Shown: positions 3,917 through 29,275 of the stretch, piece by piece
Numbering within the stretch: the first letter of the stretch is position 1
Layout: each line of letters opens with the position of its first letter
Assembly (NCBI RefSeq): GCF_006345805.1
Contig: NW_021833167.1
Span: 1-29,337 of the forward strand
DNA from: Octopus sinensis
Taxonomy: Eukaryota
Direction: 5' to 3'
Length of the DNA: 29,337 nt
Translations under genes and position numbers: made by a program
The notes under the pieces: generated by a model
Databases searched by the model: none
What the model was told of the DNA's origin: nothing
The model's input: the letters and a program-made list of their open reading frames with translations, nothing else

Positions 3917-4259
3917 GTCATTGTTGTTGTTGTTGTTGTTGTTGTTATTGTTGTTTATCTTCTTGTTATTTATTATATATATTTTTTCCGTTTCTGATGC
4001 TATTTTCGCTGTTGTTGTTAACGCTGTTGGTTGTTTTTAATGGCAGTCGTTGTTTTTGACTTTAAGAGTGTAGGCGTTTTATGAATGTATTTGCGGAGAG
4101 CCGTTCGGATGTGTGTATGTGTGTGTGTGTGTGTGTGTTTACGTATATGTAAATATATGAGTCTGTGGTGTGGTGTGTGGTGTGTGTGTGTGTGTTTACG
4201 TATATATAAATATATGAATCGGTGTGTGAGTCTGTATGAATCAGGAGCGCGGTATGTGT

Positions 4260-5130
4260 TCCGCCGAGGTCGACTTTGCCTTTCATCCTTTCGGGGTCGA
4301 TAAATTAAGTACCAGTTATGCACTGGGGTCGATGTAATCGAATTAATACCTATGTCTGTCCTAGTTTGTCCCCTCTGTGTTTAGCCCCTTGTGGGCAGTA
4401 AAGAAATAGGTATTTCGTCTGCCGCTACTTTCTGAGTTCAAATTCCGCCGAGGTCGACTTTGCCTTTCATCCTTTCGGGGTCGATAAATTAAGTACCAGT
4501 TACGCACTGGGGGTCGATGTAATCGACTTAATACCTATGTCTGTCCTTGTTTGTCCTCTCTGTGTTTAGCCCCTTGTGGGTAGTAAAGAAATAGGTATTT
4601 CGTCTGTCTTTATGTTCTGAGTTCAAATTCCGCCTTTCATCCTTTCGGGGTCGATAAATTAAGTACCAGTTACGCACTGGGGTCGATGTAATCGACTTAA
4701 TACCTATGTCTGTCCTTGTTTGTCCTCTCTGTGTTTAGCCCCTTGTGGGTCGTAAAGAAATAGGTATTTCGTCTATCTTTATGTTCTGAGTTCAAATTCC
4801 GCCGAGGTCGACTTTGCCTTTCATCCTTTCGGAGTCGATAAATTAAGTACCAGTTACGCACTGGGGTTGATATTATCGACTTAATCCGTTTGTCTGTACT
4901 TGTTTGTCCTCTCTGTGTTTAGCCCCTTGTGGGTAGTAAAGAAATAGGTATTTCGTCTATCATTATGTTCTGAGTTCAAATTCCGCCGAGGTCGACTTTG
5001 CCTTTCATCCTTTCGGGGTCGATAAATTAAGTACCAGTTACGCACTGGGGTCGATGTAATCGACTTAATACCTATGTCAGTCCTTGTTTGTCCCCTCTGT
5101 GTTTAGCCCCTTGTGGGTAATAAAGAAATA
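4260..5130 (+). mobile_element. SINE family B tandem array: 5 units (first 5'-truncated), ~184-bp period, flanked by ggtatgtgt direct repeats
   Basis: Unit junctions aaagaaata|ggtatttcg at 4409, 4594, 4763 and 4947. A B-box-like gagttcaaattcc is present in each complete unit. ggtatgtgt occurs at 4251-4259 and 5131-5139. Confidence 0.9.
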
Positions 5131-5139
5131 GGTATGTGT

Positions 5140-6428: not shown

Positions 6429-6724
6429 TATAAGTGTATGTAGATATTTTGTCATTTATTGTTGTTGTCGAACTGTATTCCATCCTTGACCATCCCATCA
6501 TATTTTCTGGGAAAACAATCTCCTATTCGGGATAAGAAATATCTCCAAATCCCAAAGTGTGTCCTTCCGTTATTCAAGATGTTTGGGCGTGGTTTAATGT
6601 GAATTTGACTGTATTTTCACGCGAGTTGAATGACCTTGCTGTGGTAATTGTTGTTGTGGTTGTTGTTGCGGATGTTTACACTATTGACGTAGGTCAGACA
6701 GTAATCTTAGTAGCAACAACAAAA

Positions 6725-7677
6725 TCGTTAGCACGCCGGGGGCGAAATGCTTAGCGGTATTTCGTCTGCCGTTACGCTCTGAGTTCAAATTCCACCGAGG
6801 TCAACCTTTGCCTTTCATCCTTTCGGGGTCAATTGCATAAGTACCAGTTACGCAATGGGGGTTCGATATAATCGACTTAATTCGTTTGTCTGTCCTTGTT
6901 TGACCTCTCTGTGTTTAGCCCCTTGTGGGTAGTAAAGAAATAGGTATTTCGTCTGCCGTTACGCTCTGAGTTCAAATTCCACCGAGGTCAACCTTTGCCT
7001 TTCATCCTTTCGGGGTCAATTGCATAAGTACCAGTTACGCACTGGGGGTCGATATAATCGACTTAATTCGTTTGTCTGTCCTTGTTTGACCTCTCTGTGT
7101 TTAGCCCCTTATGGGTAGTAAAGAAATAGGTATTTCGTCTGCCGTTACGCTCTGAGTTCAAATTCCACCGAGGTCAACCTTTGTCTTTCATCCTTTCGAG
7201 GACGATTGCATAAGTACCAGTTACGCAATGGGGATCGATGTAATCGACTTAATTCGTTTGTCCGTCCTTGTTTGACCTCTCTGTGTGTAGCCCCTTGTGG
7301 GTAGTAAAGAAATAGGTATTTCGTCTGCCGTTACGTTCTGATTTCAAATTCCGCCGAGGTCAACCTTTGTCTTTCATCCTTTCGGGGTCGATTAAATAAG
7401 TACCAGTTACGCAATGGGGCTCGATGTAATCGACTTAATCCGTTTGTCTGTCCTTGTTTGACCTCTCTGTGTTTTGCCCCTTGTGGGTAGTAAAGAAATA
7501 GGTATTTCCTCTGCCGTTAAGTCCTGAGTTCAAATTCCGCCGAGGTCTTTCATCCTTTCGGGGTCGATAAATTAAGTACCAGTTACACACTGGGGTCGAT
7601 GTAATCGACTTAATCCCATTGTCTGTCCTTGTCTGTCCCCTTTGTTTCGCCCCCTGTGGGCAATAAAGAAATAAATA
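6725..7677 (+). mobile_element. SINE family B tandem array: one head plus 5 units of ~186 bp, flanked by an 18-bp TSD with 2 mismatches
   Basis: Head aatcgttagcacgccgggggcgaaatgcttagc; ggtattt unit starts at 6756, 6943, 7129, 7315 and 7501. ttagtagcaacaacaaaa (6707-6724) versus ttagtagcagcagcaaaa (7678-7695). Confidence 0.9.
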
Positions 7678-7714
7678 TTAGTAGCAGCAGCAAAAGCAGA
7701 AGCAGCGGTAGAAG

Positions 7715-8149: not shown

Positions 8150-8610
8150 GACGATGATGATGATGACACCGACGACCTGCGATGATGATGATGATTGTGG
8201 TGAAGGTGATGAGGACGATGACAATGACGACGACGATGACGATGATGATCATTGTGGTGGAGGGGATGATGATGATGATGACGACGACGACGATGATGAT
8301 GATGATGATGATGATGATGACGATGTTGATGATTGTGGTGAAGGTGATAAGGATGATGATGTTGACGCCGACGACGACGATGATGATTGTGGTGAAGGTG
8401 ATGAGGACGATGATGACAATGACGACGACGATGACGATGATGATCATTGTGGTGAAGGGGATGATGATGATGATGACGACGACGACGATGATGATGATGA
8501 TGATGATGATGATGACGATGTTGATGATTGTGGTGAAGGTGATAAGGATGATGATGTTGACGCCGACGACGACGATGATGATTGTGGTGAAGGTGATGAG
8601 GATGATATGA
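8150..8610. repeat. (GAT/GAC)n-derived minisatellite with ~192-195 bp higher-order period
   Basis: tgtggtgaaggtgatgagga recurs at 8196, 8388 and 8583; there are seven tgtggtg(a/g)agg subunits. Confidence 0.9.
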
Positions 8611-9798: not shown

Positions 9799-10178
9799 CT
9801 ACTCGTTTACTTGTTTCAGTCATTTGACTGCGGCCATGCTGGAGCACCGCCTTTTTAGTCGAGCAAATCGACTCCAGGACTTTGTAAGCCTAGTACTTAT
9901 TCTGTCGATCTCTTTTGCCGAACCGCTAAGAAACGGGGATGTAAACACACCAGCATCGGTTGTCAAGCGATGTGGTGGGGGGGGGGGGCAAACACAAACA
10001 CACAAACACACACACACACTTATACATTATATATTCTTTCAGTTTCCGTCTACCAAATCCACTCACAAGGCTTTGGTCGACCTGAGGCTATAGTAGAAGA
10101 CACTTGCCCAAGGTGCCACGCAGTGGGACTGAATCCGGAACCGTGTGGTTGGTAAACAAGCTACTTACCACACAGCCA
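9799..10178 (-). mobile_element. SINE family A, near full length
   Basis: Reverse complement of the 1400-1725 copy plus the tRNA-like head (gggactgaatccggaacc...ctacttaccacacagcc). Confidence 0.9.
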
Positions 10179-13059: not shown

Positions 13060-13439
13060 ACTCTTTACTCTTTATTTGTTTCAGTCATTTGACTGCGGCC
13101 ATGCTGGGGCACCTCTTTCAGTAGGGCAAACCGATCCTAGGACTTATAATTTGTAAGCCTAGTACTTATTCCATCGGTCTATTTTGCCGAACCGCTAAGT
13201 TACAGGGACGTGAACACACCAGCATCGGTTGTCAAGCGATGCTGTGGGGACAAACATATACACACATATACACATATACGACAGGCTTCTTCCAGTTTCC
13301 GTCTACCAGATCGACTCACAAGGTTTTGGTCGGCCCGAAACTTTAGTAGAAGACACTTGCCCAAGGTGTCATGCAGCGGGAATGAACCCGGAACCATGTG
13401 GCTGGTAAACAAGCTACTTACCACACAGCCACTCCTACG

Positions 13440-13815: not shown

Positions 13816-14102
13816 TAAAATATAATACAAAAAAATAATAATGCCGTCTATTCAGTAGCTCCAGACTCCAGGGAAGCTGTGTCTCCTCGGAAAATCTTTG
13901 TGGTTGGTGGTACCGGATTGTTGGCTCTTTCATTGGCGCCAAGTTCTAATCATCGAAAGTGATCCACATTTTGTAATTGTGCATTTGTCACGCGAGGTCA
14001 ATAAAAGAAGCGAAACAGTCATTATTAAAAACCTGGTATACGACTGAGGCTGTATTTAATTAAAACTTTTACTCTGTCGATAGACCAGTTGCTGCAGTGT
14101 TA

Positions 14103-14549
14103 TTTTTAGATATGAACATACTTTTGTTAAAAAACACAATAGCTATCAAAAAAAAAGACGGAAATATGTCCCAGCTGGAGCCAATGAATCCTTTCTTTGC
14201 GTTTTCTTATATCAGGGACAAAGAATTTTCGTTCCAGCATGTGGGTGGCTGTGAATACACGTCATTGACGAAGCGCAAAACGACCGAAATGTTTCTGACG
14301 GTCTCGACTCCCGCTGCTGGCATAATTTTTAGATATGGATGCTATTGTTAAAATACACAATAGCTGCCAAAAAGAGACGGAAATGCGTCCAAGTAGGGGC
14401 CAAGGAATCCTTTCTTTGAGTTTTCTTATATCAGAGACAACGAATTCTCGTTCCGACATGTGAGTGGCTGTGAATACACGTCATTGACGAAGCTCAAAAA
14501 CACCGAAATGCTTCTGACGCTCTCGATTCCCGCTGCTGGCATAATTTTT
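14103..14549. repeat. Tandem duplication of a ~223-bp unique segment (2 diverged copies)
   Basis: tttttagatatg at 14103 and 14326; shared ggctgtgaatacacgtcattgacgaagc and cccgctgctggcataatttt; two 2-bp indels between copies. Confidence 0.9.
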
Positions 14550-18399: not shown

Positions 18400-18890
18400 T
18401 ATTCATTTACATGGTACATCTTACAGCGGCCATGCTGGAGCACCACCTTGAAGGGGTTTTTATTCGAACAAATCGACCACAGGACTTATTCTTTGTAAGC
18501 CTAGTACTTATTCTATCTATAGGTGGCTGAAGATTGCTCGACATTTTAAAACTGATGTAATACTTATAGTGTTTAATAAAATGAAGTAGCATGAAACGAT
18601 CGTACCACATTACCTCGGATATACTTGCTTATTTTGATTGGAATCACCCCATGGATTTATATGGATAATACCATACAAAATTCTGGTGCCTTTTACTTAA
18701 GTACCATATTCATCTGAATCTATATATATATATACGACAGGCTTCATTCAGTTTCCGTCTATCACATTCACTCACAAGCATTTGGTCGGCCCTAAGACAT
18801 AGTAGAAAACACTTGCCCAGGGTACCTCACAGTGGGACTGAACCCGGAACAATGTGATTGAGAAGCAAGCTTCTTACCACACAGTCACGC
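18400..18890 (-). mobile_element. SINE family A split into 3' (18400-18516) and 5' (~18730-18890) parts around a foreign ~200-bp segment
   Basis: The SINE match stops at ctagtacttattctatc and resumes at tatacgacaggcttc. Confidence 0.75.
18523..18608 (+). ncRNA. Type I hammerhead ribozyme motif (Penelope-type, palindromic minimal stem III)
   Basis: gtgg-CTGAAGA-ttgct...agcat-GAAA-cgatcg-TA-ccac. Stem I gtgg/ccac, both core boxes intact, stem III acgatcgt is self-complementary, and the cleavage triplet is GUA. The stem II closing pair is a U-U mismatch. Confidence 0.65.
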
Positions 18891-19159
18891 CTCTATATTT
18901 TATCTTTAACCATTCAACCATGATTATTCTACTCATATTCCAGCAGATTTGCGTTAAATTACGCACCTGATCCGTGTGAGAAATTTATTATCTTTCATCC
19001 GCTGAACGCGGCGGTAATTTGAGATAAGCTCTGGCTTTGTGCGTTTAATTATCCTTAATTAGTAAAACCTGACTGAATTAATTGCTCAGGGATAAGATAT
19101 CTTGAGCAGGGGTAAGAAATAATTAGCGCTAACATGGAAAAAATTAGTCTCTTTTACCC

Positions 19160-20079: not shown

Positions 20080-20492
20080 TCTCTTTTACTCTTTTACTGG
20101 TTTTAGTCATTTGACTGTAGCCATGCTGGAGCACCGCCTTTAGTCGAGCAAATCGACCCCCAGGACTTATTCTTTGTAAGCCTAGTAGTACTTATTCTAT
20201 CGGTCTCTTTTGCCGAACTGCTAAGTTACGGGGACGTAAACACACCAGGGTCGGTTGTCAAGCGATGTTGAGGTGACAAACACAGACACACAAACATATA
20301 CACATACATAAATATATATATATATGTACATATATGCGACGGGCTTCTTTCAGTTTCCGTCTACCAAATCCACTCACAAGCTTTGGTCGGCCCGAGGCTA
20401 TAGTAGAAGACACTTGCCCAAGGTACCACGCAGTGGGACTGCACCCGGATCCATGTGGTTGGTGAGCAAGCTACTTATAACACAGCCACTCC
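20080..20492 (-). mobile_element. SINE family A, near full length
   Basis: Tail ttttactggttttagtcatttgactg through head gggactgcacccggatccatgtgg. Confidence 0.9.
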
Positions 20493-20519
20493 TGGTTATG
20501 TATGCAGACAAAGCAATTT

Positions 20520-20963
20520 AATTTCTGACTATAAGCATAAGGCATGAAGTTTTGTGGGGAGGGTATGCTCGATTACGTCAACCCCAAACTCATCTGGTAC
20601 ATATTTCATCGACCCTAAAAGGACGGAAGGCAAAGTCAACCTCGGCGGAATTTGAAACCCTAAAGACGGACGAATTACCTATTTCTTTATTACCCACAAG
20701 GGGCTAAACACAGAGGGGACAAACAAGGACAGACATAGGTATTAAGTCGATTACATCGACCCCAGTGCGTAACTGGTACTTAATTTATCGACCCCGAAAG
20801 GATGAAAGGCAAAGTCGACCTCGGCGGATTTTGAACTCACAACGTAACGCAGACGAAATACCGCTAAGCATTTCGCCCGACGCGCTGACGTTTCTGCCAA
20901 CACGCCGCCTTTGACGGCCGAATTACCGTTAAGCATTTTGTCTGGCGTGCTAACTGTTCTGCC
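20520..20963 (-). mobile_element. Full-length SINE B (20680-20912) inserted with a 15-bp TSD into the head of an older related SINE (head 20928-20963, body ~20520-20664)
   Basis: TSD on - strand: ggtaattcggccgtc (20913-20927) and ggtaattcgtccgtc (20665-20679). The young copy starts aaaggcggcgtgttggcagaaacg and ends aataaagaaata. Confidence 0.85.
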
Positions 20964-21114
20964 GATTCTTTGTAAATGCACAAAAACCGTTTTAAGGGCT
21001 ACATACTTTGTATTGTTGTTATTGCATTAGCGAAGCAATTATGAGAACGGAACCAATTAAGAGATAAGCCCCACTTTCCTGGTGATTAATGGGTACGTCA
21101 GCTAGTATACATAT

Positions 21115-25329: not shown

Positions 25330-25930
25330 CAAGAAGCTTGCTTCCAAACCACATGGTTCCGGGTTCAGTCCCACTGCGTGGCATCTTGGGCAAGTGTCTT
25401 CTACTGCAGCCTCGGGCCGACCAAAGCCTTTTGAGTGGATTTGGTAGACGGAAACTGAAAGAAGCTTATTGTGTTTGAATATATATATATGTGTGTGTGT
25501 TTGTGTGTCTGTGTTTGTCCCCCTAACATCGCTTGACAACCGATGCTGGTGTGCTTACGTCCCCGTCACTTAGCGGTCCGGCAAAAGAGACCGATAGAAT
25601 AAGTACTGGGCTTACAAAGAATAAGTCCCGGGGTCGATTTGCTCGACCAAAGGCTGTGCTCCAGCATGGCTACAGTCAAATGACTGAAACAAGTAAAAGA
25701 GTAATATATATATATTTGTGTATGCATATATTTGTGTGTGTGTCTGAGTTTGTACCGCCTCCATCGCTTGACAACCGATGTTGGTGTGTTTACGTTCCCG
25801 TAACTTAGCGGTTCGGCAAAAGGAACCAATAGCATAAGTACTAAGCTTACAAAGAATAAGTCCTGTTTGACTAAAGGTGGTGCTCCAGCATGGTCGCAGT
25901 CAAATGACCGAAACAAGTAAAGGAGAATAA
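25330..25930 (+). mobile_element. SINE family A (25330-25700) followed by a second 3' half (~25740-25930)
   Basis: Head catggttccgggttcagtcccactgcgtggcatcttgggcaagtg; the tail gtcaaatgac.gaaacaagtaaa occurs twice. Confidence 0.85.
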
Positions 25931-27930: not shown

Positions 27931-28282
27931 TTTGTTTGCGTTTCTGTGTTTCTGTGTACGTTCAGATTCATTCGCGTATTTCATATACGTGGCAATCATT
28001 TTTCCATATACACACATGTATACAAGAGTAGATGAATGTCTATACAGTTTACGTAGCCCCTGGCAAGGAATTAAGCGTCCCAACATATATTCTCCCAGTA
28101 AAACACACTGATTTTTTTTTCTTTTTTGTCATTTTATTTTGTTTTATTTGTATATTTTCATATTTTATTTTTGTACTAATTTTCTTAAACAGTTATTATT
28201 TGGCACTGAATAAGGGAATCTACTACAGCTACTACTACTACTAATAAAATAATAATAATAATAATGATGATGATGATGATAA

Positions 28283-28942
28283 TTCGTTCGTTTATTGGCC
28301 ACAAGGGCTGACAAAAATCAATTAAAACATAAAGGGACAAAACACAGGACGAAAGTTACAAAGGGTTTTGTCCGTTTGAAAAAGGTCCGTGTACAAAAGC
28401 AGGATGACAACGAAATATAAGTAACAATTAAAACTCCCAATAGGGGGAGGCGCTTCGAAAGGGTTACTCGTGGAAAAAACCATAAAAGCCACGGGAGCCT
28501 GGTCAAAAGGGGGTTAGAGAGCCCCTTTCTCCTTTTATATTTCCTTTTAATTCTCACAGGTGTATCCTCAGAATGGCCCCTTTCACACTGGCCATTCTTG
28601 CAGCATTCACCCACCTTTCAATAAACTTGCTACCAGACAACACTTCCCTCTCTACTCTCATCTTCCTTTTCAAGTGAAACTTGAAAAAGTTGATGAGGCC
28701 TTGGCCAAAGAGGAAAGTGTCTGAGCTTAGCCCTTTCAAACGGGTCCACCATATCACCTCTTTCGCTACAACCACTAGGCAAAGGAAAACTGCTTTGTCC
28801 TCCCGGTTAAAGGAGGTCGGCGGGGCAATCCTCACTATGGATTCAGCTGATAGCCGGATCCGTCTATACGCGACAGTAGATGTTCGACATAAACCCATAG
28901 TTCAGCAATACTCGGGCACTGGACGAGTGCGTGCAGAACGGT
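28283..28942 (-). mobile_element. 5'-truncated L1/Tx1-clade LINE: ORF2 C-terminus (one frameshift, stop at 28554-28556) plus 3' UTR
   Basis: TVLHALVQCPSIAELWVYVEHLLSRI / RIRLSAESIVRIAPP...VAKEVIWWTRLKG...RIHL*. The HxLxxCP zinc-knuckle end and the AKxxIWxxR motif are typical of L1/Tx1 ORF2. The 3' end is ccttgtggccaataaacgaacgaa. Confidence 0.8.
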
Positions 28943-28954
28943 AATAATAACAAT

Positions 28955-29275
28955 AAGCGCCTTCTACTATGGCCTCGAGCTGACCAATGCCTTGTGACTG
29001 GATTTGGTAGACGGAAACTGAAAGAAGCCCGTATATAATATATATATATTATATATATAATGGGACAAGAGCCACCACCATCACCACTACAACCATCGGT
29101 TGACAACCCATGTTGCTGAGTTTGCCATGCTGTAAACTAGCGGTTCGGCAAAAGGGAAGAGATAAAATAAACACCTGGTTTACAAAGAATAAGTCCAGGT
29201 ATCGATTCCTTCGACTAAGAACAGGTACTGCTCCAGCATGACCGCTGTCAAGTGACTGAAACAAGTAAAAGAATA
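28955..29275 (+). mobile_element. SINE family A, 5'-truncated
   Basis: ccttctactatggcctcgagctgaccaatgcc...actgaaacaagtaaaaga. Confidence 0.85.

Follow-up and report, generated by a model that had tools for sequence, protein, structure and literature searches.

A SINE of Octopus sinensis that carries its own target motif, and the tandem arrays whose units begin at that motif

A short interspersed element of Octopus sinensis, here called family Y, integrates preferentially at GGTAT-type sites, and the same GGTAT occupies positions 51-55 of the element itself. In the window, by which we mean the whole stretch of DNA that was analysed (29,337 nucleotides, contig NW_021833167.1 of assembly GCF_006345805.1, i.e., one complete contig out of the 13,516 that make up a 2.72-Gb assembly), a complete young Y copy sits in an older SINE exactly at that position, and every internal unit of two tandem arrays starts there as well. 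Both the target motif of Y and the nested insert are solid. A target motif carried inside a SINE may explain how a dispersed repeat gives rise to satellite-like arrays. Stepwise seamless insertion at position 51 appears to be the best-supported origin of most short arrays, with a probability that we put at roughly 0.55, and one-shot formation or unit transposition and local duplication also contribute, both being visible in the window.

The nested insertion, the SINE families and the partner LINE

Read on the minus strand, the segment at 20,522-20,963 consists of an old SINE head, a first copy of a target-site duplication (TSD), a complete Y element, a second copy of the TSD, and an old body whose 3' module is of another type (Table 1). 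The two flanking copies (GGTAATTCGgCCGTC and GGTAATTCGtCCGTC) agree at 14 of 15 positions, and both carry the private variants GGTAAT and CCGTC, which are absent from the insert's own internal copy of the site (GGTATTTCGTCTGCG). The pair is therefore a true TSD, that is, two copies of positions 51-65 of the old element; its start is also the start point of every internal unit in both window arrays. Host sequence that starts with the family motif and is directly repeated on both sides of a complete element marks the case as a canonical nested insertion by target-primed reverse transcription (TPRT). The insert is composed of a head (1-50), a body (51-233) and a tail ending in GGGTAATAAAGAAATA; its body differs from the Y consensus at three sites, all within positions 65-86, while positions 87-234 are identical to the consensus. 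A young element thus lies in an old one: once its two parts are joined across the duplication, the host shows 75% identity to the consensus of the related family O, against 96.6% for the insert and its own consensus, with the best Y copies in the genome reaching 98%. Taken separately, the old head with the first TSD copy (20913-20963) is 82-84% identical to positions 15-65 of the O/Y consensus, and the old body with the second copy (20522-20679) is 77% identical to O consensus 51-213.

The first-pass annotation had described exactly this arrangement, namely a complete young SINE inside an old one with a different tail, bounded by a 15-bp TSD at a GGTA-type site, and the description stands. Its expression for the event, an element caught inserting, is accurate inasmuch as a young copy entered an old one, the sense of being caught in the act remaining rhetorical. 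The placement of the site between the A and B boxes has only box-like motifs behind it, TGGCAGAAACG near position 13 and GAGTTCAAATTCC near position 77; neither Rfam (at the gathering threshold for the whole window and at an E-value threshold for 20500-21000) nor ARAGORN yielded a tRNA or another RNA family for the head.

Table 1. Features of the window that bear on the nested insertion, the arrays and the LINE.
Feature	Position	Strand	Evidence
Old O-like SINE head (consensus ~15-50), the element hit	20928..20963	-	alignment to consensus
TSD1 GGTAATTCGGCCGTC, upstream copy, old element positions 51-65	20913..20927	-	agrees with TSD2 at 14/15, common private variants
Young Y-family SINE, complete, 233 nt (AAAGGCGGCG...AATAAAGAAATA)	20680..20912	-	96.6% identity to Y consensus
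TSD2 GGTAATTCGTCCGTC, downstream copy	20665..20679	-	sequence read directly
Old SINE body and O-type 3' module (position 66 to tail)	20522..20664	-	alignment to O consensus
Array 1: Y 85-233, then four units of 51-233	4260..5130	+	consensus alignment
Array 1 upstream duplication GGTATGTGT	4251..4259	+	9-mer, abuts array end
Array 1 downstream duplication GGTATGTGT	5131..5139	+	partner of 4251..4259
Array 2: head truncated near 17-22, five bodies; 17-233, then four units of 51-233	6720..7673	+	consensus alignment
Array 2 outer duplication AATCTTAGTAGCAACAACAAAA	6703..6724	+	partner 7674-7695 agrees at 19/22
5'-truncated LINE fragment: ORF2 C-terminal end and ~270-nt 3' UTR	28281..28930	-	protein and 3' UTR homology

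The Y consensus is 234 nt long. Y is short, non-coding and of high copy number (76,155 exact 23-nt tails in the 2.72-Gb genome), and it is flanked by TSDs, which measure 8-22 bp in 37 of 46 solitary copies and 15 bp around the window insert. Exact head 14-mers number about 40,000 genome-wide (30,123 counted with an anchor of three of the four bases, scaled by 4/3). Y is a 234-nt SINE whose head, judged from the box-like motifs, would be tRNA-like. Family O has the same head and core as Y (113 of 118 positions identical over 51-168) and a 3' module of its own, which ends in CCTAGAGTAGAAAAGAAT; in both families positions 51-59 read GGTATTTCG.

The duplications around O elements tend to begin with AT(T/A), directly after AGAAAAGAAT (L004, L025, L043, L064, L079, L013, L053), and some O copies end in (ATT)n, so that the partner of O seems to follow a target or tail rule unlike that of Y. 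A third SINE-like repeat, unrelated to either family and containing GGATCCGGGTGCAGTCCCACTGCGTGGTACCTTGGGCAAGTG, adjoins the old O element at 20320-20500 of the window (minus strand); it accounts for 12 hits in the window, the 11 further copies including those at 10034-10178, 13266-13436, 18718-18892, 25331-25465 and 28955-29049, and is present in 33 sampled loci. Altogether, SINEs make up about 15% of the sampled DNA. For Octopus vulgaris, a share of about 11.6% of the genome has been given (PMC13282606).

A partner LINE, putatively of the Tx1 clade, had been proposed at 28.3-28.9 kb, and a 3' fragment of a LINE is indeed present there. It was recognised via its 3' UTR and by a profile-free protein search, Pfam giving no match among the ORFs of the window or in the six frames of 28.1-29.3 kb. 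The end of the LINE ORF (P0002; 28554-28901, minus strand) shares 71% identity with P0159, a protein of 1111 aa with the domains Exo_endo_phos, RVT_1 and zf-RVT, at the extreme C-terminus of the latter, and it is through this homology that an APE endonuclease, a reverse transcriptase and a C-terminal CCHC motif (zf-RVT) are attributed to the LINE. Its domain architecture, which is common to the whole L1 group, would make it an L1/Tx1-type element. The 3' UTR ends in CAGCCCTTGTGGCCAATAAACGAACGAATT at 28281. The last ~65 nt of the LINE align to the 3' module of Y, not to that of O, both in the window copy and in a full-length copy (L098, 1576-5157); the alignment scores are 28 and 31, respectively, as compared with ~14.6+-2.5 for shuffled sequences, none of 1000 shuffles reaching the observed values. 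Hence, the 3' module of Y is homologous to a LINE 3' end, which implies that the Y tail derives from an L1/Tx1-type LINE family. The LINE tail differs from the Y tail (GGCCAATAAAYGAA...), and two pattern searches for a LINE with the exact Y 3' module or its terminal 22 nt gave SINE copies only, which were either extremely truncated or had internal deletions or small indels. In both LINE copies examined, that is, at two 3' ends only, ATC/ATT repeats come next and no GGTAT; the LINE may either end in such repeats or target them.

The target motif and the occupancy of position 51

The nucleotides that follow Y tails were tabulated, as the first-pass annotation had suggested, in a position-unbiased sample, for which the 100 exact tails that come first on contig C1 were taken together with the 17 nt on the 3' side of each. 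In 55 cases the tail runs directly into SINE position 51. The 45 non-SINE flanks have T at +3 in 38 cases and A at +4 in 37; GGTAT opens 20% of them as compared to 0.069% of background 5-mers, an enrichment of ~290-fold, and TATAT opens 24% as compared to 1.7% of the 5-mers in non-SINE DNA. The consensus of the flank after solitary Y copies is GGTATT. The duplications around solitary copies present the same picture, starting with GGTAT in 10 cases, TATAT in 9 and GGTAA in 3; among ten solitary young copies, nine have duplications that start with GGTAT, GGTAA or GGTCT, and the tenth (L016) with TATAT.

The nested case of the window is one of many. A search for GGTATTTCG followed by 1-10 nt and a new head returned 145 exact matches genome-wide; directly upstream there is an old head in 41 of them (~33 loci) and a Y tail in 22 (~21 loci), and nested insertions with duplications were checked at no fewer than 54 loci. 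Resolved by hand were inserts with duplications of 8 bp (L005), 9 bp (L027) and 21 bp (L051); a site with a 13-bp duplication was hit repeatedly (L019), and at L002 a 16-bp duplication encloses two successive Y copies. When the conservation of the contexts is allowed for, junctions with a head have no more than an approximately two-fold advantage. What Y targets is the side of the junction with GGTAT, rather than the head as such. Y has other targets as well, namely the tail-51 junctions inside arrays, the related O family and, for ~45% of the insertions, unrelated DNA. The earlier proposal that the element inserts preferentially into its own head thus keeps the preference for GGTAT-type sites, its own position 51 included, and loses the specificity for the head; the outcome that would have spoken against it, random 3' flanks combined with a unique nested case, did not materialise. 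The view that SINEs simply nest at random, with no target preference, draws on the fact that nested repeats are common where SINEs cover as much of the DNA as they do here (~15% of the sample); the ~290-fold enrichment of GGTAT and the many loci hit refute it, and we assign it practically no weight.

At L090 (1-560; C1:~11936000), two full Y copies are each followed by the same 18-bp CATATATATAAAACAGGC, a layout of the form TSD1-(SINE-TSD1)x2, i.e., a target-site triplication.

Seamless junctions are far more numerous than nested inserts with duplications. One hundred Y-type position-51 sites were preceded by a head in 52 cases, by a Y tail in 47 and by other DNA in one; for 100 O-type sites, the counts were 47 after a head, 49 after a Y tail, none after an O tail and 4 after other sequence. 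Since position 51 is joined to Y tails only, array growth appears to be tied to the Y machinery. Unique DNA rarely contains headless copies with a start at position 51, and arrays account for about half of all bodies. By a rough estimate, generic GGTAT sites are occupied to ~0.3%, as compared with ~50% for SINE position 51. The seamless junctions are ~250 times commoner than duplication-bearing nested inserts, which amount to about 0.4-2% of the full-length copies and to some 1-3 of 100 in the unbiased head sample, roughly the number expected from the motif alone. No extended motif that would explain the ~100-fold excess at position 51 was seen in the unique targets. Tentatively, and with more doubt than confidence, the excess could be ascribed to a homology-assisted "retro-homing" of the SINE RNA or cDNA onto its own copies by the APE-type LINE machinery; if this is true, a non-autonomous element would be a direct generator of satellite DNA, producing one 184-bp unit per event.

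A rarer type of junction joins the Y tail directly to head position ~17-18 (AAAGAAATA followed by AGAAACGTTAGC), as at C1:834759, C1:6575631, L082 925-1141 and L028 2560-2678. The AGAAA microhomology at these junctions suggests template switching or microhomology joining.

Composition of the arrays and their possible origins

The arrays have the structure of a SINE-derived satellite: tandem units made of a part of the SINE, with periods of 184 and 186 bp, and at one end a longer unit extending to the terminus of the SINE, the first unit being the one that carries the head. It had been claimed that the internal units of both window arrays begin at one and the same site after the Y tail, and every one of them does, with GGTATTTCG directly following AAAGAAATA. 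In other respects the two arrays differ. The units of array 1 are heterogeneous and have no private variants in common; the flanking 9-mer occurs exactly twice in the window, once at each array end. Since the first unit of array 1 is truncated at position 85 and so has no position 51, the array was not assembled stepwise in place from a monomer; it must have come in as a whole or been made in a single event. A near-identical source was not found, the best match being 92% among the 40 of 5082 candidates that were scored. In array 2, units 1-4 have private variants in common, e.g., GAGGTCAACCTTTGCC, and unit 5 is independent, which indicates one original element together with local duplication or repeated use of one source.

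The window has two other tandem structures. The segment at 8180-8610, GAT/GAC-rich and beside long ORF-like frames, looks like low-complexity rather than coding sequence; a higher-order period of 195 bp is repeated in it 2.2 times with 96% matching. At 14102-14549, a 219-bp segment that has no relation to the SINEs is present twice in tandem (86% matching).

To see arrays without selection, 60 heads were taken in genome order from the first 12 Mb of contig C1. Of these, ~46 are Y-type; 13 of the Y-type heads are followed by extra bodies, the last unit being of O type in 8 of these cases. In such composites ([Y..][O]), the outer duplications are O-type and surround the composite as a whole (L004, with atatttcgttttag, L025, L043, L064, L079). 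When 18 composites were compared only at sites where the two consensus sequences agree, the first Y unit had kept 167 of 180 CpGs and had 69 mismatches at 1674 non-CpG positions, as compared with 129 of 180 and 160 of 1674 for the O part; at these shared-consensus sites, the O parts are thus ~2.3 times more diverged than the adjoining Y unit. Unselected composites gave 44 mismatches for Y vs 70 for O, and 9 vs 22 lost CpGs. In 31 arrays, most adjacent units are without common private variants and show several-fold differences in divergence; where arrays were unselected, 7 of 10 have their younger unit at the 5' end. Taken together, the graded ages of the units and the O-type outer duplications fit successive additions at position 51, and not local duplication or one-shot formation, at these loci.

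Rare variants in the first 22 nt of adjacent units, the signature expected of a duplication, gave two clear cases, in keeping with stepwise growth but too few to decide: a private variant within the first 15 nt is common to units 4 and 5 of array 1 and to units 2 and 3 of L006. The head is sometimes as young as the first body, though this comparison suffers from the shortness of the head (50 nt) and from a sample that was selected on the head 14-mer. Most arrays have 2-5 heterogeneous units, and a few longer ones exist, with 8 units at L083 and at least 15 on C1307.

The C1307 locus (54927-57165; L092, L093, L096) comprises at least 15 young Y units near the consensus, many of them with A>C at body position 173, and may be a satellite-like locus that was amplified recently. 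As a mirror image of the body arrays, there are also head-only arrays with a 65-66-bp period, in which SINE positions 1-65 are repeated, each repeat ending in GGTATTTCGTCTGCCG (C1:195358955-195359246; C7:15322784-15323080; C18:40399002-40399166; C9:16123246-16123340); these may stem from repeated nested hits or from slippage.

The following sequence of events can be envisaged. The last ~65 nt of Y would have come from an L1/Tx1-type LINE family encoding an APE endonuclease, a reverse transcriptase and a zf-RVT motif, and Y would integrate by TPRT, the first nick being made immediately 5' of the motif, between N and GGTAT, with TATAT and GGTAA also used. Since Y and O both carry GGTATTTCG at positions 51-59, the resident copies are themselves targets. 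A hit at position 51 could then have two outcomes. One would be the canonical full-length insert with a 7-22-bp duplication, as exemplified by 20665-20927; in the other, much commoner one, the new cDNA would pair with the identical resident sequence, so that the junction would be seamless and the element would gain precisely one 184-bp body (51-233), placed behind the head and ahead of the old body. After a series of such hits, a single head would be followed by many bodies, with the original duplication still on the outside, and the arrays could later also enlarge by local duplication and move as units. The homology-mediated 5' joining, and with it the reason why position 51 should be so much hotter than other GGTAT sites, is what we infer. 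With seamless junctions ~250 times commoner than duplication-bearing inserts, nearly all hits would have to be resolved by homology. There is also evidence against the stepwise scheme: in its simplest form, it predicts a copy of the first 15 nt of the target beside the O part, whereas the Y unit that adjoins the O part is mostly Y-type, not O-type, at positions 62-66. Given these Y-type starts beside O parts and the young heads, the cDNA would, if the scheme is right, often replace the resident head too.

Alternatively, an array could be made in one event, either by template switching of the reverse transcriptase at position 51 or from a multi-unit read-through Pol III transcript that is retrotransposed whole. 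In the template-switching version, the cDNA 3' end (...ATACC), which resembles the nicked target, would pair with the GGUAU that comes after the tail in read-through transcripts, and read-through is made plausible by the absence of a T4 terminator from the Y unit. The nested insert of the window would then be a motif-driven by-product only and a 100-fold hot spot would be unnecessary, in keeping with duplication-bearing nested inserts being no commoner than the motif predicts. Several loci point the same way, namely array 1, 5'-truncated at 85 with GGTATGTGT on both sides; L021 and L022, which are all-young arrays of two and three units with one GGTAT-type duplication; L010, where [O full][Y full][O 51-tail] has one outer duplication and no inner one, which suggests template switching; and the junctions of the tail with position 17 at L082 and L028, with their AGAAA microhomology. 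However, formation in one event predicts equal ages, whereas the units differ several-fold and the O parts exceed the Y units in divergence by the factor given above; the youngest unit is mostly the 5' one, and array 1 has no near-identical source among the candidates scored. On the whole, we consider a one-event origin unlikely. Still less probable are processes at the DNA level alone, i.e., unequal crossing-over between neighbouring or duplicated SINEs, or replication slippage, with the boundary at 51 being an accident of one founder dimer, even though this is the usual explanation for SINE-derived satellites (PMC10702118, PMC11481361). Private variants are indeed common to units 1-4 of array 2, to the 8 units of L083, to units 2-3 of L008 and to units of L094 and C1307, there are higher-order patterns at C1:8970276-8971767 and C1:7400076-7400442, and the period-65 head arrays and the target-site triplication at L090 also fit. 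Nevertheless, most short arrays consist of neighbours without private shared variants and of differing ages or subfamilies, and local duplication cannot yield Y-on-O composites; thousands of independent loci have this boundary in common although their outer duplications are all their own, position 51 is preceded by Y tails only and never by O tails, and the unit boundary coincides with an independently measured target motif. The independent outer duplications and the mixed-age units argue against an origin at the DNA level, not against a role of such processes as amplifiers. The descent of all arrays from one ancestral dimer, with no independent TSD-bearing insertions, which the first-pass annotation had named as fatal to its model, is at variance with the independent units and the recurrent nested duplications; the model itself, in which repeated seamless insertion builds one-head/many-body satellites, survives as the best-supported one for most short arrays and gives way to local duplication in array 2 and to arrival as a unit in array 1.

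Comparison with known systems

How a dispersed repeat becomes a tandem satellite is an open question, and the papers on SINE satellites, while calling the process "nonrandom", offer unequal recombination only. The match between boundary and motif, the mixed ages of the units and the presence of both outcomes at one site translate into a testable mechanism, which has a bearing on repeat annotation and on age estimates that count an array as a single insertion. Our survey of the cephalopod literature found nothing on SINE arrays or target motifs.

Tx1L of Xenopus, R1 and TRAS/SART are sequence-specific APE-type LINEs, and homology-assisted 5' joining has been reported for R2/R1-type elements. 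Y would resemble such sequence-specific LINEs in the defined nick site, the repeated hits at the same site and the seamless junctions where the cDNA could pair with the target sequence upstream. Unlike those LINEs, it uses a short, degenerate motif, ~45% of its insertions are in unrelated DNA, and the preferred, repeatedly hit target is the non-autonomous element itself. In this last respect, Y is comparable to the Alu-into-Alu clusters and to the jerboa Dip/B1 multimers (cited in PMC10702118), where a SINE likewise holds a good target for its own LINE machinery; in those cases, however, full-length elements are joined at A-rich tails, whereas here the target is internal and it is a headless 184-bp body that accumulates.

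Among the SINE-derived satellites, the sSats of squamates (Vassetzky et al. 2023, PMC10702118), whose origin was ascribed to unequal recombination and for which no target motif was given, share with the octopus arrays the tandem units made of a partial SINE, the longer terminal unit that reaches the SINE terminus, the occurrence of short variable loci beside a few long ones, which are homogeneous in the squamates, and the independent origins at many loci. Unlike the squamate units, those described here have a boundary that coincides with the integration motif, are independent and of differing age in most short arrays, and are dispersed genome-wide and very frequent. In the bivalve Scapharca broughtonii, multimers of the type TSD1-(SINE)n-TSD1 have been ascribed to recombination between duplications (PMC11481361); as in the octopus, there is one outer duplication, the first unit has a complete head, tRNA-like in the bivalve, the later units are cut at the same head position, and mixed-family arrays occur. 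The internal units of Scapharca, unlike ours, are also truncated in the 3' tail and involve only ~3% of the SINEs, whereas here every tail is complete. SINE-derived satellites are already known and the proposed mechanism is the new part: what sets the octopus arrays apart is the boundary that matches the target motif, the occurrence of duplication-bearing and seamless products at one site, the age-graded independent units, and the large scale.
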